Source: Andalucia godoyi And28 (taxonomy: Eukaryota > Protista > Jakobida). Taken from it: a DNA stretch of 44,954 bases. Under the pieces are notes generated by a model, which searched no databases, was not told the origin of the DNA, and saw only the letters and a program-made list of their open reading frames with translations. Location of the stretch: assembly GCA_009859145.1 (NCBI GenBank), contig VRVR01000063.1, positions 15,283-60,236 on the forward strand, read 5' to 3'. Position 1 is the first letter of the stretch. Every line of letters starts with the position of its first letter. A program made the position numbers and the translations under genes. This document shows positions 1,451-35,489 of this stretch, one piece after another.

Positions 1451-2980
1451 TTGCGCCACCCAAATCTGACCGTTTCAAACAGTGCTTCTGTGTTTTATGT
1501 TCTTATGTTCCTGCTCTTAAGTTTTCTGTTATTCTATTTCGTAAAATTTGGACAAACTCTTTATTTTACACTTTCTATATACGGTGCGCCACACAGAGAG
1601 TATCAGACCAATCTAAAGCAATTTCGATTTGGTCTTTCAAGTGTGAATCAAAAAGGAATCTATACTCAGTCCGATGCACTTTCCGGTGTGGTGTCTGCGT
1701 TTCGTGAACGACCGTGCACATCCTTGACCAGCCCTCTTTGCTATCCTGTGGAGAACGTTCTTGTCAGCGCAGATGAAATGTTCACGAACTTTTATCGGTA
1801 GAATGCGACGACGTACACGGTCGGTTTTAGGACTCCTACGTTTGTGACGCAGATGATCAATTGGGACAGCCGCGTGAGTGCGAATTTGGAATGCGCAGCA
1901 AACAGCCTCCAATCCGAGTATTCACAACGATTCTCGGACATGAACTCCCGGGTGTCGATATACTTTGGAATCATCGTCCCGCTGTCTCTTGTTCTGCTTT
2001 TGATCATGATCCTGTTGTCCAACAAGATCCAGGAAGAGTTCCGCCAGGTGCAGCTCCTGATGTTGATGCTTCCTTACAAATGCGTGCAAGACAATCGAGC
2101 TATACATTCTCTGCTCTCTTCGGGACACGTACAGGCATCGGAGGCCGCTGAAGACGACACGAAGCTCGTAGACATGTCGGAGGCTCTGCCAGACGCTCTG
2201 GTGGAAGTTGACAGATCGGAGAAAATCGTCTTGGTGAACCGAGCGGCTGGGATCATGTTTGGATGTTCGCGAGACGTCTTGATTGGACAGTCCATCCGGG
2301 AACTGTTTACCGAAGCGGACGCGTATAAGGTGGGAGAATTCTGCCGGATGCTGAACGAAGCCGAAGTGTCCGGTCATGCATCGTCCGACATAGTTGCCGA
2401 GAAGTTGATGATGGTCCACACGCAGGATGGAAACGTGGAGACATTTCCCGCACAGATGTGCGCATCCGTGCAGCGTGGCTTCCTGATCTTGGTGATCCAC
2501 GACAGGACACAGAGAGTGGAGCAGGATTCGTTGATCAAAGAGGAGCAGACCCGGTCGGAGAAGCTGCTCAAGAATATCTTTCCTGAAGAAGTAGCATCGC
2601 AGCTCAAGAGCCGCATTCGTCCAGATGGTTCGATCGAAGCTACTCGCCCTATTTCGAAACGCTATCCTCAGGTGTCTGTGCTGTTTACGGACATTGCAGG
2701 CTTCACATCGTCCACAAAGGACGCGAGCCCCGATGAGATGGTGCGCGTTCTCAATGACCTTGTCATCCGGTTCGACCGCATTTGCATTTGATTGCTGGCA
2801 TCGACTGTGAACATTGCGAATAAGATGGAGAGTGCTGGGGTTGTTGGCCGAGTTCAGGTGACGAGAGAAACGCTGGCGCTCATTCACGACAAGTACGCGT
2901 ACGAAGAGCGCGAGAAGATCTTTGTTAAAGGTGTCGGCGAAGTCTCCACTGCTCTCATTATCGGAAGGAAGAGCATCTAA
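1451..2980 (+). pseudogene. 5'-truncated membrane PAS-adenylate cyclase pseudogene (TmcB-like family)
   Basis: It is collinear with the paralog at 4151-9215 (RFG, WD, LxxLP, PAS, LFTDIAGFT, FDCW, VNIANKME). Lesions: in-frame TAG at 1799-1801, a ~79-codon deletion at ~2786 that removes the KTIGD catalytic segment, and a 1-nt frameshift at ~2797. It ends in TAA at 2978-2980. Confidence 0.88.
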
Positions 2981-3061
2981 GAGCAGGGGGGCGGTTAGGG
3001 CAAGAGGAGAAACGAGTTGTCACCATTACTATGAAAGTGAATCCTAAAGGTTCTCGTTTAA

Positions 3062-3379
3062 TCAGATACCCGCGAGTTCCACGAACGGGCTCAAGATGGG
3101 CCGTCGGCACAGCGGACACTCGTGACGGGATCGACCAGGGGCAGGCATTCCCAAGAATGACTCCAGGCACACCCTGCAATAAATATGTCCACAGTTGGTT
3201 AGAACGCAAGGATGATTCCCAATGTATGTATCCGAGCATATTGCACAGTTGAACGATTCTTGTTGCTCGCGCAGCTTGGCTTCAGAAGACGCTAGGGACA
3301 ATTTGGACTTTGCGATCTGCGATTCTTGCAATATGATTTTCTCTTGAAGAACAGAAATGTCTGCTCGAAGACTGCGCAA
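3062..3379 (-). pseudogene. Coiled-coil plus C3HC4 RING-finger protein, 5'-truncated
   Basis: CAIC...CVLTNCGHIYCRVC...CPLC follows a coiled-coil. There is no ATG, and the frame closes at TGA 3389-3391 inside the Fanzor fragment. Confidence 0.8.
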
Positions 3380-4065
3380 GCAGTGGTATCATGGCATCGG
3401 AGCATATGCAGAGCGAAAATGGACCGAGCAGCGCAACGGCCGTGTTCGCGAGATTCTGGATGAGTTGTCGGCGCTGCCGCGGATCAATAAAGATGCCGAC
3501 TGGTTTCCGCATCTTCATTTCTACAGGATGCACATCGATGCGCTGTGGAGTCACTTCACCAACCACCAGATGGCGCGCCGCCGATTCCGCGGTCGTGTCA
3601 AGAAGCAGCAGGCGACGGTCAAGCTGCGGGACCGTCTGGCCACCCGCGACCAGGCGGACAGGTTCATCATCGCGTATGGCGACACGTCGTTTGGCCCCAC
3701 TGGTGCGAGAGGTGGGCATGCGGTTCAGGCATGTCGAGCCGATCGACGAGTACTGCACGACGAAGAAGTGCTGTGCTGGCAGAAACGATCTGGTATCACC
3801 TTTATTTCGGTTCCACCAACACCCGAAGAGACTGCGCATGCGGATGCTCGGGGATCCGGCGCTGCATCGTGAGAGCTTCGTGCCCCGGGGGTTGAGACAC
3901 TGTGCCACAGTGAACTGTCCATCTGACCGCCGGTGCGTTGGCCGCGATGCCAACGCTGCGATGAACATTCGTCAGTGCTGGCTCAGCCGACCGCCGTGCT
4001 TGTGTCGGAATCCACGCGGTATTCCCAGTGTAAGCGAGCTAGAGTCTCGCGTAGGGCGCCCCTGA
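3357..4065 (+). mobile_element. Fanzor1: Fanzor1 (eukaryotic TnpB/Cas12-like) nuclease remnant, C-terminal half, frameshifted
   Basis: Frame A (3357-~3722) reads RKQWYHGIG...RRRFRGRVKKQQATVKL...IIAYGDTSF. Frame B (~3718-4065) reads IDEYCTTKKCC, HCATVNC, RDANAAMNI and RPPCLCR. This matches the Fanzor1 RuvC layout: Gly at the canonical RuvC-II position, alternative Glu in DEY (3748-3750), RuvC-III Asp (3946-3948) and a C-terminal RPxxLxR. The RuvC-I DPG motif is absent. Confidence 0.85.
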
Positions 4066-4148
4066 AGATGGGTGTGAGGACTGCGAAGGATGTGCACTGG
4101 ATATGTCTGGTTCTGCCGGACATTTCATTACCTTTCCCCTAAAGGATG
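4021..4148 (+). ncRNA. Candidate omegaRNA scaffold overlapping the Fanzor 3' end
   Basis: Stems found by eye: 4025-4032/4093-4100, enclosing hairpins 4034-4038/4046-4050 and 4056-4061/4070-4075. These are followed by 4103-4110/4116-4123 and 4131-4135/4141-4145. The position matches TnpB/Fanzor guide scaffolds. Confidence 0.5.
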
Positions 4149-4150
4149 GA

Positions 4151-7100
4151 TTACTTCTTGGCAATGATGAGTGCAGTGGAAACTTCGCCAACACCCTTGA
4201 CAAGCACACGCTCTCTTTCCTCGTACGAGTACATCTCACTGAGCAGAGCAAGAGTTGATTTGCTGACTTGGACACGGCCGCACATTCCGGTGCTTTCCAT
4301 GCGACTTGCAATGTTGACGGCAGGAGACCAGCAATCAAAAGCAAACTTGTCTTCGCCAATGACACCACCGACGACGGGCCCACTGTTGATTCCAACGCGC
4401 ACGTTCCATTCTGCCGCCAACGGAGTTCCGAGAGCAAATTCTCGAATGGACGCAATCATTTCCAATCCGCATTCAACAGCATCAACGGCGTGGCAGTCTG
4501 ACCGACTGCTGTCCAATCCAGCTATGGCAAAAAAGGCATCGCCGATCGTTTTGATTTTCTCGACACGGTGCTTCTTGCAAATGCGATCAAAGCGGACGAC
4601 AAGATGATTCAGAACACTGACCACTTCTTCCGGAGAAGCATTCTTGATGGATTCCGTGAAGTCCGCAATGTCGCTGAACAAGATAGACACTTGTGGATAA
4701 CGCTTTGCAATGAGCGCAGGGGCATTAGCGCCGTCCGTGGCGGTTCTCGACAAAGATGTCGTCTGCGAAGCCGCAATGTTCCTGTTCTTCAGCTGGATGG
4801 CTACTTCTTCCGGCAAAATATGGCGTAACAAACCTTCAGACCGGTTCTGCTCCTCCTTGAGTACAGTATCTTGTCGATGCTCGGCCGTCCGATCCTTGAC
4901 AGCAAAACCAAGTATCCACCTTGTAACGAGAGCGTGAGCTTTGCAGGGAATGGGGTGTCCGCAGCATTTTCATGTCGAAGCATATTCAACTGGACTTCCG
5001 TTCGATCGGAGTTTGCAGCCTTCAGAGCATCGAACACGTGGTCCACAGCGACCTTCTCAGCAGAATTAGAAATTGCAAACAACGTACGTGCGGACCGGCC
5101 AAGCAACTGATCTCTTGGACGACCAAACATCACTTCTGCAGCGCGATTCACAAGTCCACTTCTCCGTTCTTGTCGATTTGCACCACCGCATCTGTCAGTG
5201 CTTCCGACAGATTGAGCGACGTTGCGTCCGTTTCCTCCTCCTTTGCCTGGATAATCTCGCCAGTTGAAAGCAGCACAAACAAGCGACCGTTGGAAAAGAC
5301 AGTCTTCTTAGGCAGCAGCGTCAGCAGCAAAAGCACCTGCCGGTTTTCGTTTTCGATGCGAAGCGATACAAGGATCATGATCAGCAGCATCCCGAAAAGA
5401 ATAACCGGCAAGGAAACAGCAAAGTAAACCGTCACACGAGTCTTGACTGCGTTCAGACTGTTGATCTCGTTCTCTGTCATCTTCTTCGAGGTGCTGACGA
5501 TGTTTTCCGACAACCGTTTGTCCCAGTCAGTCAGCTTGATCAGAGTATTTGCATTTGCGTATGTTGCCAACACCGTGGCAATGGGGAGCCTCCCAAGGTC
5601 AGAAAACCAGTTTGCCTGTGCAATTGCAATTTGCTCCGGGGACATGCAGGCAGTTGCAGTGGACGGAATGCAAGCTGATGCTCGGAACGCGTCTTCCAAG
5701 GACGAGTCTGCCATCTCAAATATACCTATCTGGCTTCGACTCGAAACTCCAAAGCGGTAACGGTCAAGCGCACTCGACAAATCCGATGCATACTGCCCAT
5801 GGCCTGCAATGATTGTCGCCAAAATAGCCGCCGGCAGAGGATAGAACAGAGCGACGCACGCCAAATCCGTCCCAGAAGCGTAAATGCGCCAGAATTCCAT
5901 CGGCGCCAGAATTTCATACCCAATTCCTTTTGTGTTGTTGTACAACACATATTGCTCCAAGGAAAACGCCACAACGAGGAGAAGGAGCACAGAAAGCAAG
6001 AGGACAATGCAAAAGAGCGTCCAGTGAAGTAAGTGCGATTGAAATTCAAAGATGATATACTGAGAATCGTCTTCCATGATCATTGAAGAATCTCTGTCCT
6101 GCGCAAACTGTGTTGCCAGGTTGTGCACAGTCTGCGATGCGTCCGCCTTTGGCAGACTCTCGATAATGTCATACAGACACCGCCTCTCCCTCCTGATTCG
6201 GCGAATGGCGGGCACCAGGAAGCAGATCGGAACAAGGAACAAGAGGAACAAAGACACTCCAAGAATTACGGAGTTTGTGACAATCATTTGCGATCGGAAA
6301 ATGTCGCCGAATCTCGATATGTACTCTTCAACGATTTCCCGATACGCGTTGCCAATCGGAGCAGCATTGAGAACTAGGAAAAGATGCGTACTCGACACCA
6401 CACAGCTCAACAAGGAGTAGGAAGGGAACTGCAAATTGCAAACAACTCGGAGTCTTTGCAATTCAATGACGAGTGAATCCCAAGGTGAAAACGGATTCCG
6501 AAGGAAGTCATCTCCAGTGAGAATCACTGTTTCGTCTTTCCACAATCTCATGAGCGTGGGATTGTCAACAGGTGGATTCTTCACAACCAAATCGTCCAAA
6601 AGCGAGGGTGCGAGGTTCAGAAGATTTGCCTGTAGCGCATAAGCCGTGGCGTAGGAGTTGTTCAAGGCGAAATTCGTTTGCGCGAACATCAGCGTTGACC
6701 TCATACTGAAAGTCTGGCCCATTTGATTCAGCTGACTAGCTTCGTACACCTCCGTTACACTAGTGTCCAACTTGGTAATGAGGCTATAAATCAATCCGAA
6801 TGCAATGGACATGATCACGACCAAAATCAGGACAGTTAGAGACATCGCGGTGATCATCAACCACACGGAGCGCGACTGATCCTTATGCACTTTCTCCCGC
6901 AACGACGCGTCCTTTGTTGATGACGCCGCAGAAGAACCACCATGGGATGAACCTTTCTCTGTTTCTTCTTCCACCTGCTGCGAACCGGAAGGAATGTCCG
7001 AGATAATAGAGAGCTTGCCACCTTCTTGAATGGACGGACAGTCCATTTCCAGTGTTGAGAGACGACGACGGCGATTGGAGCCGGGCTGCAGGGGGAAATT

Positions 7101-9215
7101 ACTTGAGAAGCTGCCCTTTTCGGGAATACCGAGAGAGAGCATGGAATTCGATCCCGCGCTGATGTCCCCGCCTGTGCCACATGTGCTCGCGTGTTCCATT
7201 CGCACTCGCCGAACACCATCCGACCTACCCATTTCAGAAGAGGCTGCATCCATTCTCGAAGAGGGAACGGAAGGGACCAAAAGTGCAGTAGAATACATGC
7301 TGTTCAAATCGCCCCCCTTGCAGCCCGAATCCTTATCCTGCCGTGTGTCGTTTTCACTCTCATATTGTTCAGCCATTTCCAACAATCCCTCGGCTCGGAC
7401 AGAATCGCGAAGGATGTTAAGGGTGAACAATGCATACTCTCGCAAGACAGCAGCAGACCGCGGAAATCGTTCTGTCAGTGTTCTGAGCTGCAATCGCAAC
7501 AGCTCAGTTCGATTGGAGATGACGCTGGAAAGACCGATCATGGATTCTGGAGACACCTTATTTTTCGCAATGTCGCGAAAGAATCGCAACACAAGACTCT
7601 CCAGAATGCGTCTTCCCTTTTGCACAACTTTGAGATGCACAGATATTTCACGTGATTCTTCCGAGAATCCCGAAAGCATGGAAATTCTCAAGTCGTAGCG
7701 CGCAGCGTTGAACAACAAGAGGTGCCACCACTTCGACAGGCCTTGTCGTTCAATGTCTGTCATCACATTGAACAGGGATGATCGTTCATGGGGACAGTAG
7801 TTCATCAAGAACAGTGCATAGTGCAGGAACACAGGAGTGGGATAGGTGGATTGCCTCAGTTCGGCTTGCAGTATGTAGCGGCACATGGCATGAACGTATG
7901 GATCCTCCGCAACAGCAAAGCGGCATGCTCGCTCCAATGTAAAGAAATCGTGGAACTTGAGAGCAAACACGCTGACAGCGGTCGGATTTGTTGCTCCACC
8001 ACTGCCACCTGAGAAATTGCTTGCGTCTGCACCAAGAGATGACTGGGTCGAATCAGCTTCGGAAACGTCATCTTCCGCGCTGACCGAGCTAGAGGCACCT
8101 GCAGACGCCATCTTCTCTTCCTCGGGCAAAACGCGGTTCTTGCGGTAGGAGGACCCCGGATTCTTCAGACTGCAGGATTCCAACAGCGTTCGAATGTACT
8201 AATTGTACGAATTCCAAAAGTATGCTGCACCGGCAGGAAAAATGACGATTGACAGTAAGAATCCAAACGCCCAGCTTGTGCGGCTGCTGGACGTAGAAAA
8301 TGCCGAAAACAGAAATGATGTCAGGGAGATACCCCCTGTTGTCCACAACCCGATTGAGTACAAAAGGTTAGCCTTCAGGTGGAGCATGGGAAGCCGCACA
8401 TGAAACAGCTTCCCGAAATAAAAGCAGACCAGGATTTGGAAGAACGACGGCAGCCATGCGGCGGTATCCTTGGGGTACACCGCACAGAACACGTACAACA
8501 CACAGCAGACCAAGCGAGCGGCACAAAAGCCTCCGACAGAAAAGATGTCGTTGCGCGCAAACGGTGCCGTAGTTTCGTTGAACCGGGTTTGGATGAACAA
8601 AAATGAATGGATGATGTCCGTGGCAGTCAACAGGACAAGTGAGAATGCAGAAAATGTCTGGGTCGCAATGGAGAACGAGGATGACCAGCACTCCGTACCG
8701 ACTGCAAAATCCGGTTGGCAGGTAACAGACCGCAAGAACAACATGTAGCCGGGGATTGCAAATACCGTGTGCATGATCCAGGACACCAGATTCAACCATT
8801 TGAGACCAAACACGAGGGATTCGTGGTTTCGCAGGAGCCCGGCGATGTTCCAAACGTAGAAACCGCAAAGAACAGTCAGGAAGAGGCTGCCGACTAGGGT
8901 CCACAGCAGCTGGAGATTTGCAGTGGGAAGAAGCAAGTCTGGCTACACAACCGAAAACATCACGGACAGAGCAGTGTCTGTCGCGGACCCCGCCAGTGCA
9001 GACGAATTCCACAGAGGCTTCATCGCGAGAATGATGAACTGCACGAGCGACCCGCCAATCAAGACACCAGCGGTTGTCCTCGGATGAAAAGGGAATGCAT
9101 GCTTCCCGATGCGGTGGAATACGGTGGCCGAATTCGTGCTGGGTCCTTCGAGACGGTCGTCTTGCAAATCCGTGCCCTGGAAGTCCGACTCGCCATCAGT
9201 GTTATCGGCATTCAT
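4151..9215 (-). CDS. Multi-pass TmcB-like membrane protein with PAS and class III adenylate cyclase domain (~1688 aa reconstructed; interrupted)
   Basis: ORFs 8943-9215, 8199-8936 and 5148-8183 share one frame and are separated only by TAG (8943-8945, 8199-8201). 1-nt deletions at ~5154 and in the A4 run 4904-4907 join the PAS and cyclase parts. The catalytic set is complete (LFSDIADFT, EKIKTIGDAF, FDCW, VNIASRME) with ATP-type Lys/Asp. It ends in TAA. Confidence 0.85.
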
Positions 9216-11195: not shown

Positions 11196-12098
11196 CTATT
11201 TCCACCGATCATCTTGGCGAATATGAGACTGTGCAGGTGAGCAAAATTCATTTGGTGCTATCAATCCCGGAATCATCCACGGGTTCTGGACACAAGGGGT
11301 CGGCTGCATCTCTGGTGCGCTCCTCTCTCGGTGACGGGCGGCGAACACAGGGCTGCGTACTAATGATCGATCATAGACACTGGTAGGATTACCTACGAAA
11401 TTGTGACCAAAGAATGAAAATTCTGTCGAATCGTCGGCAGAACCGAGGTTGCAAAGCTCGCTGCTGTCGCTTCGCGTCGAAACGAGGTTTGCGTGATGCG
11501 ATATCTCGTGCTGCTCAGTAGGATCACAATAATGGAGAAAGCAGTTCTCCAAACTTTGGTTTTCCGGAGATTGCGGATGGCAAATGTACGGGATCGGCAG
11601 TTTATGCCAACCAGGGACAGGGACAGCATCTGCGGAAAGGGTGCTTTCTGGATGAGTGAATCCTCCGGATCGCAACGCGAGAGGACTCGTCTCATGCGAC
11701 ACCGCGCTTATCTGGTCCGAGTCTCTCGAAACCCCATCTGGTGGGCTCACCGAGGGAGCAGAAATGAACAATTGTCGAGAGCGGAATGGACCATTGCGAC
11801 TCTGTTTCACCGCATGGCCTACACCGAATGTCCCATAATCATCGTTTGTGATGCACTCGTGCTCTTCATGAGCTGCTGCGAAATAGTGATCCAGCACAAT
11901 TTGCGGATCAACAGAACTGCATTCGTGAAGAGTGGAGCCAAGATCGGGTTCACTGATGATGATGATTGCGATTTCACATCCACATAAGAAAGAAAGCTCC
12001 ATCGCTTTTTTGAAAAGACCAGCTTTTCGCTTACGAAACGTGACATGACGTTTCTGCTCGTTTCTCACCAAAGAAATCGTAATCCTTTTTCTGCCCAT
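11196..12098 (-). CDS. MADS-box transcription factor (MEF2-like)
   Basis: MGRKRITISLVRNEQKRHVTFRKRKAGLFKKAMELSFLCGCEIAIIII is a canonical MADS domain starting at ATG 12098, followed by a low-complexity tail and a TAG stop. Confidence 0.92.
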   Translation of the reverse strand: MGRKRITISLVRNEQKRHVTFRKRKAGLFKKAMELSFLCGCEIAIIIISEPDLGSTLHECSSVDPQIVLDHYFAAAHEEHECITNDDYGTFGVGHAVKQSRNGPFRSRQLFISAPSVSPPDGVSRDSDQISAVSHETSPLALRSGGFTHPESTLSADAVPVPGWHKLPIPYICHPQSPENQSLENCFLHYCDPTEQHEISHHANLVSTRSDSSELCNLGSADDSTEFSFFGHNFVGNPTSVYDRSLVRSPVFAARHRERSAPEMQPTPCVQNPWMIPGLIAPNEFCSPAQSHIRQDDRWK

Positions 12099-13560
12099 AG
12101 CGAGAGTAGTTGATTTCTGGATATTCTCAGAAAAAAGCAAGGTGAAAAGAAGCAAAGAGGTGAGGCAAGAGAAACCAGCGGAAAGGATTTGGGATGACGT
12201 CGGAAATGAAACCCAGTGATTTCGGAAATACGAGTTGGTGAAAGCTGTAAAGTTTGGAGTAATTATAAAGATTTGCCCAGGCCAGTTCAAGCGCACTTGT
12301 CCAAACGCCAGCAGTCCAAAACCCCAGGAAACTGGAAGATCTGTTCATCCCTCACGGAATCCGCTGTCACAGCCGGTGCGAGCTGCAACTTGTACCAATG
12401 ACCTCTCCCTCCTAAAAAACTGGGAATCTCCATCGCCAAACAAAGACATGGAGGTTCCCAAACCAAGAATCCTCCCGGAAAAGGTGAAGATCAAAAAACC
12501 ATGGGTTTTAAATTAAACAACAAAACACGAAGTCCAGCATGAAGGAAATTCTTGTGCATCTGCTTGCTGAGCGGAGAAAGTGTTTACGAGAATGACGTAG
12601 AACCTTTATTTCAGAACTGAGCAAACAGCAAGTGAACATCCACGAATCAGAAGAAAGCTTGTTTGGCGGAACAGTGATGAGACGTAGTTGTGGTTTTATT
12701 CTATCACCGGCGGTCGACATCGCTTCCGATCCACGTAGGAGATGTGAAGCACTATTACAAGCCACACAAATGGTGATGTCCGATCCGCCTGGATTCGACC
12801 TTGCCGTGTCATTTGCTTTCTGGAAATTATCAGCACAGTCGTAGCCTTGCGCGTGCGCTGTCATCGAGCCCTTGGTTGCAAAGCGAAGGCCGATGCTGCG
12901 GTACCATCAACACACAGCCACATCACTCACCAATGTTGGCATTATGTTGACCTCTATTTGATTTTGCTGACGGTTTTCAGAAGTACCGATTTCCACTTTG
13001 AATATCTGTATTGTTGAAAGAAGCATAGAAGATATGGCGCGAAGAGTGACAACATCCTGCTAGCGGCCAATTTGGCTTCCTGTGCATGCGGAGATACACC
13101 ATCTGTACGCAAGGATTAGGAAGCAGAATTCGGTCGAGACTGTGTTCAGATCCAGAACAAAGTTGTTCTTGGTGTGGTTTTCCAAGTATGGGCATTCGAT
13201 CACACATTCGAGGACATCAATCGCCTTTCGATGAGGTTGTTGCGCTTAACCTTGTCAAATGCTCGAGTCTGCCTATGTCTCTTGCGCATCACCAATTCAC
13301 CATCAGCTCCGAGATCCGGATGTTTCCCAAAGAAGGCCCGGTGAAGGAAAACATCCTTCTCGTTTTTACCTCCGAGTGTATTTTTCAGAATGAGCTGCGC
13401 CCTGTACATGCGTCTTCCATACGTGATCGTTTGCATCACGCATACCTGGTTCTGACATTACCCCATCCTTTCTTCTTCTTCTTCCTGAAGATTCGGAACC
13501 GAACCAGGTGGGTTTCCTTATTTCCTTTCTAACCAGTCAAAAGTCTATCTTCAAACAAGA

Positions 13561-14806: not shown

Positions 14807-15469
14807 TCAGTTTTTTCCAGATGCTTTGCTCTGAGCCGTTGCTTGCGCAGTCTGGACGAATCCACTATTGTAGAGTATGAAAATTGTTTTGAGAAAGCGT
14901 GCGAGGCGCATCCAGTCTGAACCTATTGCAGCGTAAATGTGTGGATTTTTTGATTGTTTTTCCTTTCCTTTCTTTTCTAAAACAAAGGATCCTCGCTGAA
15001 CTGATCTGATCACCGCAAGCGACGAAATGCTGTACTCGAAAGATACCTTTCGCGAATTCAGTCGCTGCCTGAAGGAGATGGACACATTATTTTCTGACAA
15101 TTCTGCATAGAACTGTGCCCCGACTGGACCTTCTTCGTCGTCCTGTCTTGAGTTGCGCATCTATATACGACTTCCCGGGCATCCGTCTGAACAATCTGTC
15201 AATCCATATATGAACTTCGGTTGGGAGAAGCAAAAATCATCTGCACACTCCTTGGAACCTGATTTCTTCAAGTTGACCGGGAGTTTGTTCGTACCGACCA
15301 GTTTCAGTAAAATTGCATGCAAGCAGCATTTCTGCCCAAATCGGAATTGATGTTCGCCAAAAGTGGGCACTTGCAGCGTACGAAAGTGTTCTCGGTCATT
15401 CAAGCTGACAGAATCCCCACGTATTGCGAATTTGTGGCTTTTCGTGTTGTTGCCTCCATGACTTTCCAA
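14807..15469 (-). pseudogene. Interrupted ORF with a possible Death-domain-like segment
   Basis: ORFs 15161-15469 and 14807-15160 are in frame across one TAG (15161-15163). IYAAIGSDWMRLARFL resembles the first helices of Death domains (lG.dW..LAR.L). The match is short. Confidence 0.25.
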
Positions 15470-15519
15470 TTGGTTTTCCTGGTGTCAAGCAACAATATCA
15501 AACTCCACAATTCAGACAA

Positions 15520-18453
15520 ATGAGTGATCATTGTCCGCCGTCAGCCTCGCATGGCACAGAGAGCACTGCACACTGCAATGTTCCAAAGAGCAACATGGAG
15601 GTATTCTCACTTGGTCATTCCAAGCTCATTTCCGAATTGCAGGCTTTCCGAGAGCGACTGGCTCAGCTTGAATCGATGGAACGAGCAAGTTTACAAGCAG
15701 CAGAGTTGTTTCGATTAGCCGTAGAAGCAAGTCCAACCGCGTTGCTCATGGTAGAGGGCGGTCCAAACGGGATCATTCGGTTGGCCAACCGTGGCTCCGA
15801 GCTTCTTTTCGGGTATACCAACGAGCAGTTGATCGGCAAGAAGATCGAAATGCTCGTTCCAGATCGAATTGCCAAAGTTCACCCGTCATTTCGTGCCGAG
15901 TTTGCAAAAGATCCCAAAGCAAGGTCTATGGGAACGGGACGCGATCTGTTGGCGAAGCGATCGGACGACACGGAGATCCCTGTCGAAATTGGTCTTAATC
16001 CAATTCAAACGTCAGACGGTCTTTTTGTCCTCGCTAGTATCATAGACATCACGGAACGCAAGATGGCTGAGGAGCGGTTCCGTCTTGCGGTCGAAGCCGC
16101 GCCGAATGCCATGTTTATGGTTGGAAAAGATGGGAAAATCGTCATGGTCAACCAGCAAGCGGAAAGAATGTTTCTCTATTCGAGAGAGGAACTGGTCGGA
16201 CAAGCGATCGAAATACTGGTTCCGGAAAGCGTTCGTGACCAGCATCCACAGTTCCGTAGCACCTTTTTTGGATGCCCCGTTGTTCGGGCGATGGGGAAGG
16301 GGCGCGAGCTCTACGGCCAGCGAAAGGATGGCAGTATTGTTCCAGTCGAGATTGGACTCAATCCCATTGAAACTGCAGAAGGTATGATCGTGCTGGCCTC
16401 CGTAATTGACATTTCGGAAAGGAAACGGATGCAGGAGGAACGGCAGATAGCGCTTGAAGCTGGCCTGCAAGCGGATCTTGCGAAAACGAGAGAGCGCCTT
16501 CGAGCCGAGTTCCTGGCTCGCATGTCGCATGAGTTGCGGACACCGGCGAACGCTATCATCGGAATGACAGATATTCTGATAGACACCGAACTGTCCATGC
16601 AGCAGCGCGACTTTTGCCAGACCATCGCGACGGCGGCACAGACCCTAGTTTCGACTATCAACGACATTCTGGATTTTTCAAAATTGGAAGCTGGCAAGAT
16701 GACGATCGAGCACGTCAGCTTCGACCTGGAAGTCCTTCTTCACGAGTGTTTTGAAATGATCGCTCCCAAGGCGCAGAAAAAGTGTCTTGGACTGTCTCTC
16801 GTCGTTGACGGTCCGATGCCAGTCCTTGTTTGTTCTGATCGGAGTCGTCTTCGACAAGTGGTACTGAATCTGTTGAGCAATGCTGTGAAGTTTACAGATT
16901 CTGGCGGCATCCTTTTAGAACTTCAAAATTCGTTGATGAAAGCGAATGGCACCAGAGATGCCGATTACTGGGACATCTGGATTGTCGTATCGGACACTGG
17001 AATTGGAATTTCCGATGATGCACAACCTCAGTTGTTTCAACCTTTTATGCAAGGAGACTCGAGCACGACTCGCAAGTATGGCGGAACAGGTCTCGGTCTT
17101 GCCATTTCGAAGCGAATCATGGATGCCATGGATGGTACCATCACATTTCAAAGCAACGATGGCCGAGGTTCGCGATTTCAAATCCATCTGCAGATGGAGC
17201 GGTGTATGGATAAAGGATTGCCTCCTTGCGATCCTGCCGTTGCCATGACTAAGAAAAGCGCATTGATCGTGGATTCATGCCAGATTGACAGAGACGCTGT
17301 TATGAAGCAGTGTCATATGTGGGGCATGACGACCGCAAACGCACGGTCGTTCGAGGAGGCAATGGAGATGGCCAAGCGACAAGCGACTCCGTGTGATTTT
17401 CTCATCGTCAGCTTGTGTGGAAACGATGTGGCTCCGGCGGTGGAATTTGTTTCGCGGATGACTAGTATTATGTCTTGCCATGTGTTGTGGTTGCTTTCTC
17501 TGAACACAAGTTCATCTCAAGTCTTCTCGCGGCCTGGACAATTGGCTCTCTCAAAACCGGTGAGTCCGTCGCAGTTGCTGGACTCTCTGCTGTTGTTGTG
17601 TAATGATCGTCTTTCACCTGCCTTGGAAACCCAGTCGACGCCACCTTCTGCGCCTGGACCTTCAAACCGCAGCTTGTCGAATCACCTGTCTTCCTTCTTG
17701 CCTTGCCGGGCGCCGTCACCCGCAACTGTCTACCGAGGAAAGGTGTTGTTGGTGGAGGACAACCCAGTGAATCAGAAAGTCGCGATCTTGCTTCTACAAA
17801 AAATTGGCTACAACGTTGACTGTGCAAATAATGGGCAGGAGGCACTCATGGTTCTTGAACGAGAACCCTACTATCTGGTTCTTATGGATATTCAGATGCC
17901 AATCCTGGATGGATTGGCTGCGACGAGTCGCATTCGCGAGCAAGAGACGGAATTTCAGCACGTTCCCATTATCGCCATGACGGCACATGCGATGGAAGGC
18001 GACAAAGAGAAGTGCCTCGGAGCAGGCATGGATGACTACGTCTCCAAGCCTATTGACAGGATCCATCTCTTGCATACTCTTCGAAAATGGGATACACCGA
18101 TCAACGAAGTTGTTTGGATGAGACTTTTGACCTCTATGGGTGGTGATGAAGACGTTCGAAACCAGGTGGTCGCAGAGTTTTTGACGATTTCTTCGAAGTC
18201 ATTTGACGAGCTGCGTGTTGTTGTTCATGATAAGAGTACCACAGTTGAGAATGTCAAACGTATTGTGCACCGCTTGAAGGGGGCATGTTGTTCCGTGGCG
18301 GCGTGCCGCATGCACAATATTTGCCGTCGCATTCTGATGCTGCCATCTGCAGAAGATGCAAAGGACCGAGTAACTGACTTGTGTGAATGGCTTTTGACAG
18401 AGCTGCCGCTCGTGGAACGTGCATTGCGGGCGAAGATCGGGCTGTCCAGTTGA
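15520..18453 (+). CDS. Hybrid sensor histidine kinase: PAS-PAS-HisKA-HATPase-pseudoREC-REC-HPt (977 aa)
   Basis: Two tandem PAS repeats 123 aa apart (starting 15709 and 16078). H-box RMSHELRTP (His 16528-16530), N-box [10 protein letters not shown]1 DTGIGI and G2 GGTGLGL. The first REC lacks the phospho-Asp; the second has VEDN/MDIQMP/TA/KP. HPt VHRLKG (His 18268-18270). Intronless. Confidence 0.95.
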
Positions 18454-28224: not shown

Positions 28225-29634
28225 TCAGTCTCTCCGTTTGCCGAAGTCACCAATCCTACAATCGCTTTCTGATCCGAGATTCAGTCGATCTTCGATACTT
28301 TCCCCGGAAGCTCTCTTCGCGTTGTTGAATGGTGACGCAGAAGAACCAGACGTTTGGGGCGACTCCCGTGAAGAACTGGCGCATTGAAACGTATCTGGAC
28401 GACGTGGGATCTGGCAAGGGACGGGCACCGATGGCATGTAAACTGGATGCTGCTCCGTACGCGAACTTGGGCGCCGGTGAGGAAGTTCTGCTATCTGGGC
28501 GCAATATTCTCTCAGTCTCTGATCTGGAGAACATGCGGGACTCTGATTGGGATACCAGCAATCACGAGACCCAGGAAGAGCACTGCGAGAATAAACATGC
28601 TGTCCAGAAACTGTACCACCTTGCAGAGGTATGCTTTGCCACAGTAACAGAGGCCCAGAAGGATAGAGAGCAACCGCTGGCATGCGCGCGAACACTTGAT
28701 TCATCCTGTTAAGAGAGGGAAGTGAAACGGATCTGAAAGGATTGGGAATCAACTGTGAATGTGTAGTTGCCGATGAACTGAAAGCATCTTGTAAAGTGAG
28801 AGTTCGGTTAAATTGAACAGCGGCATCATGGACAGTGTCAACGTCACTGCGACTTCTCAAGGAGTGCACGGGCAATGGAGTAGCAGCGTACAAGTTATCC
28901 TCTTGTGGCAGATATCCTGTGGAAAGGTTCTGATGGAGGAATTTGCGCGGGTTTGGATCCAAAATATGATGCTGCGACTGCAACATAGTGCGATATTCCA
29001 GGCTACGTCCTCCAGGAATCGGGCCTGTCAAGACATTCCCGGAAAGTGAAGGAAAAAGGGAAGAGGGAATCGTGGACACGGTATATTCATTTCCTGTGCA
29101 ACGTGACGAACAGGCTTTGGTGTTTGCAGCATGGCCCAATTGCATATATTCATGTGAAGGCGCCAAACTGCGCAAGGCAGATGAAGGTCCGTCGTGGTGC
29201 TGTTCCAAAGTCCTCACAGTTGAATCCACATCCCACGCCTGTGGATTGAAAGGGGATTCTGGATATTCGTTAGACTGGGCATTGCTCGGAATATCAAGAA
29301 ATGCGCTCTGGGAAGGACCAGCAGTGCTAACAGCCCGTGGAATCTCCGGAGACATTCCAACATTTTCCAGAGTACATGGTCGATGGTGATGCCAGATTCG
29401 CTTCCAATTTTCGACGTCGCTTGATTTGTCTTTCATTTCGACAACAGTCCTTTCATGAAAGAGTATTTTAGTTTTCCAAGGTCTACCACGTTTTTTGTCG
29501 GTATACACACACTCATTGCGTGTTTGCACACATCGCCGACAAGGAGGGCCTGACCGATCGCACTTCGTGTGAACGTTTCGGCAAGAAATACAAGAACTTG
29601 GATGAAGATGTGAGCCAGGTTGAAGGTTTTCCAT
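28225..29634 (-). CDS. Zn(II)2Cys6 transcription factor
   Basis: MENLQPGSHLHPSSCISCRNVHTKCDRSGPPCRRCVQTRNECVYTDKKRGRPW, followed by a Ser/Pro-rich disordered tail and a TGA stop. Confidence 0.88.
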   Translation of the reverse strand: MENLQPGSHLHPSSCISCRNVHTKCDRSGPPCRRCVQTRNECVYTDKKRGRPWKTKILFHERTVVEMKDKSSDVENWKRIWHHHRPCTLENVGMSPEIPRAVSTAGPSQSAFLDIPSNAQSNEYPESPFNPQAWDVDSTVRTLEQHHDGPSSALRSLAPSHEYMQLGHAANTKACSSRCTGNEYTVSTIPSSLFPSLSGNVLTGPIPGGRSLEYRTMLQSQHHILDPNPRKFLHQNLSTGYLPQEDNLYAATPLPVHSLRSRSDVDTVHDAAVQFNRTLTLQDAFSSSATTHSQLIPNPFRSVSLPSLNRMNQVFARMPAVALYPSGPLLLWQSIPLQGGTVSGQHVYSRSALPGSRDCWYPNQSPACSPDQRLREYCAQIAELPHRRPSSRTEQHPVYMPSVPVPCQIPRRPDTFQCASSSRESPQTSGSSASPFNNAKRASGESIEDRLNLGSESDCRIGDFGKRRD

Positions 29635-30242
29635 GGTCACGAACTGCTTAAGCAGAAAAACTGAAAACTCCTTAAACAATTGATCTGGAATACAATATGA
29701 AAATATGAGGGTCTGCCATAACGCGTCTCTCATATCTGACCGGACTTCGACGTGAACTGCTTGTTTTTGAAGTTTCGTGAAAGTGTGGCATCTCGGAGGG
29801 ACATGGTTTTACAATCCTGTTGTCACACCAGCCAATTTGCTTGACTACGGAATTTCGGGTATTTCCTAAAAAGGCGGCCTATCGCGGAACATCCGACATT
29901 GACTTCATTATGTAGGAACATGAAAAGAGCAGTACGATGCAATTAAAAAAGACCTCTTAAACACGAAAAGGAGTATCCAGAATGGAGCTAAACATGGCCA
30001 ATGCGTCTTGTTCATCATCCACCGGCAAACATGTCATGCAAAAAGGAATTCAGGTGACTGGTAAAAAAAAAATACAGCCCTTTGGGAATGTAATTTATCT
30101 GCATTCTGGTTTCTGACACGGTTTTTGTTGGGTTGTCTACAATTGCGGATCCAAAAAATTACATGCATCTTTTTTAGTATCGGCACGATCCATTCGCTCG
30201 GAAATACCTTTCTAGGATTCGTGTTGCCTCACTTCTTCAAGA

Positions 30243-32624: not shown

Positions 32625-35489
32625 CTACTCGGCAGCAGGCTCCGAGGTTGCGGAAGCGACTTCCTCGGCAATTCCCGAGTCTCTCTCCTGGGGTGGCGTA
32701 CAATCATCATTCAACTGCTCTTCACAATTCGAAGGGGCCGACTTTTCGTTCAAACCAGTGTCGGGCACCATTTCCGCCGCACTGATGCTCGTCTCTGGCT
32801 CGGAAATTCGCGACTCTTCACTGGCGACGTCTTCTTTCTCTGGCGCCGCTTCCGTCTCCACGATGACGGTAGAGACGTCAATGCTCGATGACATCTTGCA
32901 TTCTGCAACATGCGATGATGATCCACACTCCGCGTCGTCTGTGCTCATGTCGAGCATGGGGATGGCGGGAGACAAAGGCAGAGCTGCAGACTTGCGCCGT
33001 TTCCAGAACCAGACTCCTCCAACGACAAGGGCGCCGAGGACCACCAGAGGAACCACAACAATTGCAGCAATGTCTCCTGCAGACAGTGAGCCCGATCCGC
33101 TTCCGTCAGACGATGGGGAAGAAGGGCTTCGGAGCGCGTACAAAACCGTCACAGTCGGTTGTGATCCGGAGCTGCGGACAGAGTGCAGAGCAGGTGTAGG
33201 AGACAACGGTGTCGGATTGAACAGACCGACGTACACCGGCCCGCTCGCAAGGATCGACAGTGTTGCCGTTGTCGACTCGATGCGCTGCATGACTTCCCAG
33301 CTGGCCGAAGAGGGCGACGGGTTCGATGTCGACAGATATGCGTCCACCGTGCCTCCGGTCACCGTGACAGTGATTTCGACGGTGCGGGCGCCGGCGGTTG
33401 CGAACGGAGGTGTGGAAACGAATTTTGGCTGGCCGGGAGCAACAGCACCTACCAGCACCTCTGAATTCTCGGCGACAACCTCTGTCTCTGACAGCGCAAT
33501 CCAGGCACTGCCTGCCGCCGATCCACGCATGCACACGAAGCACTTTGCACCTCGCACAAACCACGCGCTCGCCGACGTGAGCGTCGTCACATTCAGCGCC
33601 AGGCTCAGCGACGCTCCTTTGGTGCTTGCAGTCGGCAGCGTTTCAAATGTGCTGACATTGCACGAGGCAAACGATTCCACGGTCACTGCCTGGCGATTCC
33701 ATGTCGCATACACAGCAAGGGAGGCATTCGGCGAGCTCAGCTGGTGCGACGCACACTGCCAGTCTGTCGACAGCAGCGACAGTTCCGTGGGCGATAGTGC
33801 AGTCTCCGAAACATTGTAGACGTTGCACCGCGGAGCTCTGTCCACGCTGGAGACTCCGCTGCTGCAGGCCGTGCAGTATGGTGATGCAGTTGGCGAGTAC
33901 GTTCCTACTGGGCATGCATCGCACGCCCCGCTTGCATAGATGCCCGTGTAGGTTCCTGCAGGACACGGGCCGCATCCAGAGTTTCCTGATCCGGGAGCAA
34001 ACCACCCCGGGTAACACTGCACACAGCTTGCCGATCCGCTTGCGGGATACCATCCAGCAGCGCACGGTGTGCAGACGCTGACATTGTTCGCACCAACGAC
34101 TGACGACGCCTGTCCAAAGGGACAGTAGTAGCAGGAAGGCTGGTCGGGCAGATTCTGCCAGGTGCCTGCTGAGCACTGTGCACAGGTCGTTGCGCTGACG
34201 CGGTACTGGCCGGGAGCGCATGTGCAAGCGCCGCAGGACGTCGATCCGACAGCGGGCGCGCACTGTCCGGTGCTGCAAGCTGTGCAGGTAGCGCTGCCCG
34301 CCGCCGACGAGAACGAGTTCACGGCACATGGAATGCACGATGTTGCATTCGTCGAGCCGTTGCTCGGATTGTACGTGCCCGCGGGACAAAGCAAACAGGA
34401 TGCGTTGGATGTCGAGCTGGTATTCGGATTGTAGGTACCAGTAGGACACGATGTACAGTTAAGGGCTCCGTAGGCAGCAGTGTATGTTCCAGCAGCGCAC
34501 TCCTCGCAGCTTTGACCATTTTTGCCGGCAGAACCCGGCAAACATGTGATAGTCATCACGGTTCCCTTGCTGGCATATACTGCGTCTTGAAAAGCAACAT
34601 ACGGGGCTCCAGAGCTATCGAGTGCAAGATTAACGCCAGTTGCGGCTCCAGCAGAAAAGCCAGCTGATCCGACTGCTGCCCACACACCACTAGTGTACTT
34701 CATTACTGTTGCTTTGTTGGCGTTTCCTGCATCTTGAAAAGCAACGTATGGGACTCCAGAACTATCAAGTGTAAGACTCGTGTAACTTACGGCTCCAGCA
34801 GAAAAGCCAGCTGATCCGACTGCTGCCCACACACCACTAGTGTACTTCATTACTGTTGCCTTGTTGGCGTTTCCTGCATCTTGAAAAGCAACGTACGGGA
34901 CTCCAGAACTGTCGAGCGCAAACCTCATGTAACTTGCGGCTCCAGCAGAAAAGCCAGCTGATCCGACTGCTGTCCACGCACTGCCATTGTACTTCATTAC
35001 TGTCGCCTTGTAAGCATTTCCTGCATCCATAAAAGCAATATATGGTCCTCCGGAGCTGTCGAACGCAAGAGTCGTGTATTGTGCGGATCCAGCAGAAAAG
35101 CCAGCTGATCCGACTGCTGCCCACACACCACTAGTGTACTTCATTACTGTTGCCTTGTTAGAGTTTCCTGTATCTCGAAAGGTAACATACGGGACTCCAG
35201 AACCATCGAGCACAACATTCGTGTAACTTGCGACTGCAGCAGAAAAGCCAGCTGATCCGACTGCTGTCCACGCACTGCCATTGTACTTCATTACTGTCGC
35301 CTTGTAGCCATTTCCTGCATCTTGAAAAGCAACATATGGAACTCCAGAACTATCAAGTGCAAGACTCGTGAAATCAGCACCTCCAGCAGAAAAGCCAGCG
35401 TTCCCAACGCTGACCCAAGCGCTGAGCTGCTGCCCATGAGTCAAACAAACTATCGTGCAGAGGAGAACAACCTGGAGAACCAGTCTCAT
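32625..35489 (-). CDS. Type I surface protein: signal peptide, six 49-aa propeller-like repeats, Cys-rich GCC2/GCC3 (ephrin-receptor-like) repeats, TM helix and acidic tail (954 aa)
   Basis: N-terminal hydrophobic signal; repeats WxAVGSAGFSAG...LDSSGVPYVAFQDAGNxxKATVMKY; multiple CPAGTY..G...C..C units; TM segment IAAIVVVPLVVLGALVVGGVWFW followed by KRRK. Confidence 0.9.
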   Translation of the reverse strand: MRLVLQVVLLCTIVCLTHGQQLSAWVSVGNAGFSAGGADFTSLALDSSGVPYVAFQDAGNGYKATVMKYNGSAWTAVGSAGFSAAVASYTNVVLDGSGVPYVTFRDTGNSNKATVMKYTSGVWAAVGSAGFSAGSAQYTTLAFDSSGGPYIAFMDAGNAYKATVMKYNGSAWTAVGSAGFSAGAASYMRFALDSSGVPYVAFQDAGNANKATVMKYTSGVWAAVGSAGFSAGAVSYTSLTLDSSGVPYVAFQDAGNANKATVMKYTSGVWAAVGSAGFSAGAATGVNLALDSSGAPYVAFQDAVYASKGTVMTITCLPGSAGKNGQSCEECAAGTYTAAYGALNCTSCPTGTYNPNTSSTSNASCLLCPAGTYNPSNGSTNATSCIPCAVNSFSSAAGSATCTACSTGQCAPAVGSTSCGACTCAPGQYRVSATTCAQCSAGTWQNLPDQPSCYYCPFGQASSVVGANNVSVCTPCAAGWYPASGSASCVQCYPGWFAPGSGNSGCGPCPAGTYTGIYASGACDACPVGTYSPTASPYCTACSSGVSSVDRAPRCNVYNVSETALSPTELSLLSTDWQCASHQLSSPNASLAVYATWNRQAVTVESFASCNVSTFETLPTASTKGASLSLALNVTTLTSASAWFVRGAKCFVCMRGSAAGSAWIALSETEVVAENSEVLVGAVAPGQPKFVSTPPFATAGARTVEITVTVTGGTVDAYLSTSNPSPSSASWEVMQRIESTTATLSILASGPVYVGLFNPTPLSPTPALHSVRSSGSQPTVTVLYALRSPSSPSSDGSGSGSLSAGDIAAIVVVPLVVLGALVVGGVWFWKRRKSAALPLSPAIPMLDMSTDDAECGSSSHVAECKMSSSIDVSTVIVETEAAPEKEDVASEESRISEPETSISAAEMVPDTGLNEKSAPSNCEEQLNDDCTPPQERDSGIAEEVASATSEPAAE
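34550..35417 (-). repeat. Six coding tandem repeats of 147 bp
   Basis: The plus-strand motif CCAGCAGAAAAGCCAGCTGATCCGACTGCTG and its variants recur at 147-bp spacing, in frame within the 32625-35489 CDS. Confidence 0.93.

Follow-up and report, generated by a model that had tools for sequence, protein, structure and literature searches.

What is the 171 amino acid (aa) hypothetical protein that is annotated near the start of this stretch of DNA? The stretch, called the window from here on, is 44,954 nucleotides long and is nuclear DNA of the jakobid Andalucia godoyi. It comes from contig VRVR01000063.1 of assembly GCA_009859145.1, where window position 1 is contig position 15283. An earlier note on this DNA had proposed that positions 3357 to 4065 hold the remnant of a gene for Fanzor1, an RNA-guided nuclease, spread over two reading frames.

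Positions 3348-4065 on the plus strand are the C-terminal ~37% of a Fanzor1 gene, over two reading frames. In all probability this is a non-functional relic of such a gene in the A. godoyi nuclear genome. What is annotated as a hypothetical protein corresponds to frame 1 of this Fanzor1 pseudogene.

A protein called on VRVR01000063.1 matches the open reading frame (ORF) at 3357-3872 exactly. This protein (P0001) is present in NCBI, UniRef and EukProt, and its closest relatives are EukProt entries with names starting with ANDGO_, which are from A. godoyi. The last 50 residues of the model are out-of-frame sequence. The published A. godoyi assembly is compact and has few introns.

Fanzors are eukaryotic relatives of the CRISPR-Cas12 nucleases and are borne by transposons. 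They occur widely among eukaryotes, and it is common to find degenerate copies of them. For the Fanzor1 proteins of Spizellomyces punctatus (SpuFz1), Parasitella parasitica (PpFz1) and Guillardia theta (GtFz1), complexes with ωRNA and DNA have been solved.

A Fanzor1 C-terminus in two frames

The two frames were joined, and the fused translation was compared exhaustively with 1.84 billion (1.84e9) representative proteins using phmmer. This yields 89 proteins at E<=1e-3, 11 of them at E<=1e-10. Leaving aside fragments from A. godoyi itself, the matched proteins are mostly 550-750 aa long. Most are matched by a single alignment that covers nearly the whole query, spans the frame junction, and lies in the C-terminal third of the protein. 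The best match outside A. godoyi is a 687 aa protein, P0004 (E=1e-27, 41% identity, query 6-220 against residues 425-655). The PF07282 domain (Cas12f1-like TNB / OrfB_Zn_ribbon) is found on 8 of the 10 top matches scanned, in 4 cases above the gathering score.

An alignment of 40 full-length phmmer matches was turned into a family profile, A2. Its invariant columns are the Asp-Pro-Gly of DPGR, the Gly of AYG, the Glu of DEF, and the Arg-Asp-x-Asn of RDxNAA. In P0004 numbering, the invariant columns of the catalytic layout are D406, G533, E569 and D633. RDANAAMNI of the remnant aligns with the invariant R632 and D633 of P0004, which means that the RuvC-III Asp is present.

Searched against all PDB sequences, A2 finds only Fanzor1 at E<=0.01. 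The matches are PpFz1 (9CF0, E=5.3e-32), SpuFz1 (8GKH, E=1.4e-26) and GtFz1 (9CER, E=8.3e-18). The SpuFz1 alignment runs over profile positions 8-596, from the N-terminal region through REC to the C-terminus. Within the six-frame translation of the window, the same profile matches frame 1 at profile 389-513 (E=5e-24) and frame 2 at profile 516-597 (E=1.7e-19), and the two matches are collinear.

With these matches, the proposal of a single Fanzor1 remnant across two frames is borne out. The motifs that had been listed for it are all present where they had been reported, as a three-frame translation of 3300-4100 confirms (Table 1). The start had been put at the ATG at 3357; the remnant is there, but homology begins slightly upstream of this ATG, at ~3348-3375 (RTEM...RKQWYH).

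Structure prediction agrees. An AlphaFold2 model of the fused translation has a mean pLDDT (predicted local distance difference test) of 82.9. A Foldseek search of this model against the PDB places SpuFz and PpFz at ranks 1-5 (E=1e-4 to 2.4e-3, probability 1.00), and Cas12 chains appear only at E>1.

Fanzors have a rearranged RuvC-II: Gly or Pro takes the place of the canonical Glu, and the triad is completed by a conserved Glu further downstream, which cleavage requires (PMC10530073). Both halves of this rearrangement are present in the remnant, the Gly in IIAYGD and the Glu in IDEY. The earlier note had read them in this way, which fits both the published description and the invariance of the two residues in the family alignment.

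The remnant is collinear with SpuFz1, PpFz1 and GtFz1 from just after RuvC-I to the C-terminus. Along this length it has the Fanzor1 helical insertion, the [IV]xAYG strand with its Gly, DE[FY]xT[TS], a zinc ribbon with a degraded first pair, RDxNAAxNI, and the terminal RPxxLxR. Its intact relatives are also like Fanzor1 in that they measure 550-750 aa and have TDG and DPGR. Unlike a Fanzor1 gene, the remnant is only ~37% of the length, is frameshifted, has an internal deletion, and is one zinc ligand short.

Judging from the family, the ancestral gene would have encoded a transposon-borne, ωRNA-guided double-strand DNA endonuclease of ~600-700 aa. This enzyme would have cut double-stranded DNA next to a target-adjacent motif (TAM) with a single RuvC site. 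The site would have consisted of the DPGR Asp, a Gly at the canonical RuvC-II position, a Glu ~35 residues downstream in DE[FY], and the RDxNAA Asp. A zinc ribbon of the form CxxC...CxxxxC would have been located between the RuvC-II Glu and RuvC-III.

The remnant could instead stem from a Fanzor2, or from a prokaryote-type TnpB (IS607/IS605-like), perhaps by way of a giant virus or a bacterium. The RuvC and zinc-ribbon C-terminus that is kept here is common to all these families, TnpB included, and the sole direct library matches are to generic TnpB models. The rearranged 'TnpB2' proteins, like for example TvTnpB of Thermoplasma volcanium, have a Gly or Pro for the Glu and a compensating Glu downstream, just as the remnant does (PMC10530073). 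In addition, distant relatives (25-27% identity) are found on contigs of giant-virus metagenome-assembled genomes (MAGs), and the A. godoyi genome paper mentions 'transposon/viral-like' subtelomeric scaffolds that were omitted.

Several things speak for Fanzor1 over these families. Most relatives of the remnant measure 550-750 aa and have 350-480 residues before RuvC-I, where ~400-500 aa in all would be expected of a Fanzor2 or TnpB. TnpBs are found in prokaryotes, measure ~400 aa with a short N-terminal region, and are linked to the TnpA of IS200/605 or IS607, with ISDra2 as the canonical example. The relatives of the remnant, in contrast, are long and Fanzor1-like. Fanzor2, TnpB and Cas12 structures are all in the PDB, yet A2 reaches none of them at the threshold given above, while it aligns with SpuFz1 over nearly its full length (8-596). 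There is no serine-recombinase TnpA nearby. An origin in Fanzor2 or TnpB is therefore very unlikely.

What was lost

The match to the remnant begins at profile position 389, and DPGR is at 364-367, which places RuvC-I outside of it, as had been claimed. Absent are profile positions 1-388, or ~63% of the profile: the N-terminal region, REC, WED, and the DPGR of RuvC-I. Profile A2 finds no further plus-strand match within the window or in the 6.6 kb upstream. RuvC-I is missing because this copy is truncated, and not because it belongs to a different family.

A frameshift-aware dynamic programming alignment against P0004 and two further close relatives, P0006 and P0012, finds that the frame changes at 3727-3735 and that 10-12 codons are lost there. 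A MAFFT alignment puts the loss at 13 codons relative to P0004. This agrees with the earlier suggestion of a join at ~3720 and a short lost segment. The exact breakpoint is ambiguous within ~3700-3745, because both frames yield plausible residues over this range.

The spacing between the Gly and the Glu of the rearranged RuvC-II is 24 residues in the remnant, versus 36-37 in P0004 and P0006. The deletion is what shortens it. The AlphaFold2 model is disordered at residues 109-123, which is exactly the junction.

The first zinc pair has also suffered. Where the closest relatives read CCDC, CCEC or CCRC, the remnant reads CCAG, so that one ligand is lost, and the deviation from CxxC had been seen correctly. 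The Gly codon at this site (GGC) differs by one base from a Cys codon (TGC). No damage is seen in the alternative Glu, in the second Cys pair, in RuvC-III or in the C-terminal RPxxLCR.

Taken as a sequence, the remnant is most probably a pseudogene fragment that no longer functions. With WED, REC and RuvC-I missing, it would be unable to bind a guide RNA or to complete the catalytic triad. Compared with an intact Fanzor1, it has lost the half that binds guide and target as well as one catalytic residue, it is frameshifted in the RuvC core, and its zinc site is damaged, which presumably leaves no present activity. The verdict 'probably dead' stands on the missing RuvC-I, the lost segment, and CCAG.

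A number of observations weigh against this reading of the locus as a dead Fanzor1, and they are of several kinds. On the side of homology, the direct library matches are below threshold. PF07282 matches the window translation at E=0.003-0.007 (part 2: 0.0028), with 18 bits versus the 26.3 needed. NCBIfam NF040570 (RNA-guided endonuclease TnpB) reaches E=0.019, with 14 bits versus 100; a paralogous A. godoyi model, P0002, scores E=0.0015 with it. A single-sequence phmmer search of the fused translation against the PDB finds no Fanzor, only chance Cks1-like matches at E ~0.1. The TM-score of the Foldseek matches is low (0.38), which is expected for a fragment and is not compelling alone.

The window is thus connected with the Fanzor1 proteins of solved structure by a transitive link. 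The assignment rests on the profile and the predicted fold, both of which are strong. The earlier note had named the lack of a significant TnpB or Fanzor profile match as the outcome that would speak against it; what is found are sub-threshold direct library matches and strong family-profile matches, and the proposal withstands this check.

That the copy is dead is read off its letters only, and the assembly is based on 454 sequencing (PMC7050145), which makes a small indel error possible. Such an error would restore neither the N-terminal 390 positions nor the 10-13 missing codons.

Finally, the locus shows little of a mobile element. No inverted or direct repeats bracket 3348-4100, there is no transposase among the neighbouring ORFs, and no ωRNA was identified at the remnant. 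Only 85 bp separate the stop of the remnant (4065) from the stop codon of the neighbouring gene (4151). The predicted fold of 3900-4150 is modestly better than that of shuffled sequences (z=-2.0), which is not decisive for an ωRNA. Rfam and tRNA scans of the whole window gave no matches. The mobile-element context of the remnant is inferred from its family. Inverted repeats and a transposase are also missing from some genuine Fanzors (PMC10432273), and residence in a transposon is for that reason not strictly defining.

Table 1 Features of the remnant, its neighbours, the A2 family profile and the A. godoyi paralogues. Positions are those of the window unless marked as profile positions.
Feature	Position	Strand	Remarks
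Fanzor1 remnant, part 1	3348..3735	+	Frame of ATG 3357; family-profile positions 389 to ~505; helical insertion of RuvC domain (RKQWYH..., ALWSHFT) and RuvC-II strand IIAYGD
IIAYGD	3666-3683	+	Frame of ATG 3357; Gly at canonical RuvC-II Glu position
GARGGHA	3702-3722	+	Frame of ATG 3357
Break within remnant	3727..3735	+	+1 frame change plus net loss of 10-13 codons
Fanzor1 remnant, part 2	3730..4065	+	Frame of 3391; IDEY, zinc pairs, RuvC-III, C-terminus
RFRHV	3721-3735	+	Frame of 3391
IDEY	3742-3753	+	Frame of 3391; alternative catalytic Glu
CCAG	3769-3780	+	Frame of 3391; degraded first zinc pair
HCATVNC (CxxxxC)	3898-3918	+	Frame of 3391; second zinc pair, intact
RDANAAMNI	3943-3969	+	Frame of 3391; RuvC-III
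RPPCLCR	3988-4008	+	Frame of 3391; C-terminal
Stop codon	4063-4065	+	Frame of 3391
G+C-rich block	3425..4100		0.56-0.67 in 150-base windows; coincides with remnant
RING-finger ORF fragment	3062..3391	-	C3HC4; zf-RING_5, E=4e-10; no ATG
Cyclase A	1586-2971 (homology to cyclase B; to 2980)	+	5'-truncated paralogue of receptor-type PAS/cyclase neighbour
Cyclase B	8183-4151	-	Large PAS/class-III cyclase gene; complete Guanylate_cyc domain, E=3e-53
A2 motif TDG	profile 319		End of WED
A2 motif DPGR	profile 364		RuvC-I
A2 motif AYG	profile 489		Gly at canonical RuvC-II Glu site
A2 motif DEF	profile 524		Alternative Glu
A2 motif RDxN	profile 571		RuvC-III
ANDGO_03127 (P0002)			214 aa
ANDGO_03149 (P0093)			287 aa
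ANDGO_05534 (P0003)			210 aa
ANDGO_02339 (P0007)			131 aa

Relatives in A. godoyi and elsewhere

Four other A. godoyi gene models are in the Fanzor1 family: ANDGO_03127, ANDGO_03149, ANDGO_05534 and ANDGO_02339, which measure 131-287 aa. The A. godoyi copies are 74-82% identical to the one in the window. All four models retain the end of WED (...KTDGV[LS]VSF...) and RuvC-I (LVGIDPGR[AT]NIL), and they have a common start, MSSHPFPQTAKTDGV. They begin at profile 301-341, without the long N-terminal WED/REC region.

Beyond this start the models skip different internal segments, and cover for example profile 301-453 plus 553-600, or 311-416. P0002 and P0093 lack profile 454-552, including RuvC-II. 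In P0003 and P0007, either everything from profile 417 on is missing or there are two gaps, and the end of P0003 is out of frame. The pieces that are passed over have about the size of introns, and the region with the frameshift in the window is among them. These models are probably the route that the gene predictor took around pseudogene lesions.

Intact relatives elsewhere in this genome had been hoped for. Relatives that carry DPG do exist, in the form of these four models. In the predicted proteome, however, neither protein search turned up a long or intact A. godoyi copy. Apparently, either the family multiplied from a copy that was damaged beforehand, or its members decayed in parallel.

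Might the remnant be a live, shortened gene? It could then be one of a five-copy family of domesticated C-terminal Fanzor fragments, possibly spliced around the frameshift, with a role independent of nuclease activity. Frame 1 and the four paralogues are indeed annotated as genes, the paralogues share a start, and the copies are fairly similar at the identities given above. The models do not look like those of working genes, however. They skip differing segments and one of them ends out of frame, as expected of a predictor threading its way through pseudogene frameshifts, and the 171 aa model itself ends in 50 out-of-frame residues. There is also no RuvC-I, the zinc site is broken, and the frameshift is in the region of the core β-sheet, which AlphaFold leaves disordered. 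Domestication is accordingly highly improbable.

The weakest alternative is that the motifs resemble Fanzor1 by chance, or as an artefact of two overlapping frames, given that CxxC and RDxNAA are common short motifs and that a 482-base ORF overlap leaves freedom in choosing the join; this is refuted, since each frame alone matches the family profile, collinearly, at E<=1.7e-19, and whole-library matches go down to 1e-27.

The nearest relatives of the Fanzor1 remnant outside A. godoyi are P0004 (Logan SRR12487036) and P0012 (Logan SRR12113392), both of which are intact, and P0006 (ENA), which is a fragment. The ORF of P0004 is uninterrupted, codes for 687 aa with all catalytic motifs, and occupies 2173-4236 on the plus strand of a 4660-bp Logan SRR12487036 contig (L002). 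The long N-terminal WED/REC region (~350-480 aa ahead of RuvC-I) is present in P0004, P0008, P0009 and others. SPRY-domain genes adjoin P0004 on the opposite strand.

The window, P0004, P0006 and P0012 have in common AYGD[AT]SF, the CCxC site (CCAG in the window), a long zinc-ribbon insert, and GLRHC. From these sequences, this suggests that the four form a Fanzor1 subgroup. P0004, P0006 and P0012 differ from SpuFz1-like proteins in that their first zinc pair is CCxC, they carry AYGDASF, and the insert in their zinc ribbon is longer.

It could be that the Jakobida host has its own, recently active Fanzor1 lineage, which together with P0004, P0006 and P0012 would make up a distinct subclade, recognisable by CCxC and by the larger insert in the zinc ribbon. 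The omitted subtelomeric scaffolds would then harbour an intact copy, possibly active to this day, along with its ωRNA. We regard this as unlikely.

Comparing the DNA of the remnant and its flanks with that of the P0004 locus gave two short coding matches only, and no shared ends. Inverted repeats in L002 are weak. A word-indexed search with the 40-sequence alignment, aimed at named relatives or at N-terminal fragments from A. godoyi, returned P0004 only. The relatives at 25-27% identity on giant-virus MAG contigs come from a scan of viral contigs, and a metagenome scan produced one relative, on a TARA scaffold, at 26% identity. Both are too distant to inform on the element.

There is a precedent of sorts in the Fanzor 'ghost' loci of Spizellomyces punctatus, which are standalone units of ωRNA and inverted repeats without an Fz gene (PMC10432273). 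As in those loci, a Fanzor-derived locus without a functional nuclease gene is present, with several related copies in the genome. The situation is otherwise the reverse: the remnant keeps coding debris, and has no recognisable ωRNA or inverted repeats.

In practical terms, the 171 aa hypothetical protein and at least four paralogous models (ANDGO_03127, 03149, 05534 and 02339) should be relabelled as Fanzor1 pseudogene fragments. To our knowledge, Fanzors have not been described in jakobids before. As far as we know, and within the literature searched, the known range of Fanzor1 is thus extended to a jakobid. No paper that links Fanzor with Andalucia was found in that literature, and the text supplements of one study (PMC10711439) contain neither Andalucia nor jakobids nor Discoba.

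The remnant is real but an ordinary pseudogene, and it would not surprise a specialist. It leaves the understanding of the Fanzor mechanism unchanged and provides no usable nuclease. If there is practical value, it would have to come from an intact relative, like for example the 687 aa P0004. What is of interest is the host, as Jakobida are a deep and poorly sampled eukaryotic lineage, along with the five mis-annotated gene models and a possible Fanzor1 subgroup with an intact 687 aa member. As a further data point, the locus bears on how far TnpB-derived nucleases spread among eukaryotes, and on how early they did so.

Surroundings of the remnant

The G+C fraction is 0.60 over 3357-4065, against 0.44-0.53 in the flanks and 0.49 for the whole window. 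The G+C-rich block that coincides with the remnant suggests that it came from a mobile element of different composition.

Two class-III adenylate/guanylate-cyclase paralogues converge on the remnant, which lies in the 1.17 kb that separates their stop codons. Cyclase A is short of ~70 aa in its catalytic core, is interrupted by an in-frame stop at 2789-2791, and is probably a pseudogene. The reading frame of cyclase B is broken into three (5148-8183, 4801-5151 and 4151-4831), which may reflect introns, frameshifts or assembly errors.

On the other strand, a fragment of a RING-finger ORF has an open frame that ends exactly where the Fanzor homology begins. The RING is preceded by a coiled-coil-like stretch. 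The ORF is absent from the protein collection, and a word-indexed search found no homologue of it. It and the Fanzor remnant appear to be truncated at one junction. The RING ORF marks the 5' truncation point of the remnant; it is not shown to belong to the element, and looks like another truncated gene fragment.

A retroelement (gag-pol) occupies 1-900 on the minus strand and continues off the start of the window. It has a gag-like CCHC knuckle (KCHGCGREGHIRPDC) followed by a retropepsin-like LLDTGSS. The 299 aa gag-like ORF has no Pfam match at E<0.01. The retroelement is 2.4 kb from the remnant, with the cyclase pseudogene in between, and it adjoins assembly gaps (runs of N at L001 6190-6650 and 3050-4800). 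Debris has accumulated in this region, which is on a small scaffold.

A second Fanzor fragment was considered at 1703-1807 on the minus strand, where A2 matches at profile 252-290 with the REC-region motif LAPI..I..HFITID (E=0.0045). It was rejected as probably due to chance. The match is antisense to the coding sequence of cyclase A, and no collinear TDG or DPGR comes after it.

Further along, the window holds ordinary host genes. These include a MADS/SRF-type transcription factor (11196-12296, minus), a hybrid histidine kinase with PAS, HisKA, HATPase and receiver domains (15424-18453, plus), and a protein with an ephrin-receptor-like Cys-rich repeat (32625-35489, minus), within a stretch that is locally G+C-rich (0.60 at 33001-34000). 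A 502 aa ORF at 28225-29733 on the minus strand carries a 'fungal' Zn(2)-Cys(6) binuclear cluster domain (E=7e-7), here in a jakobid.

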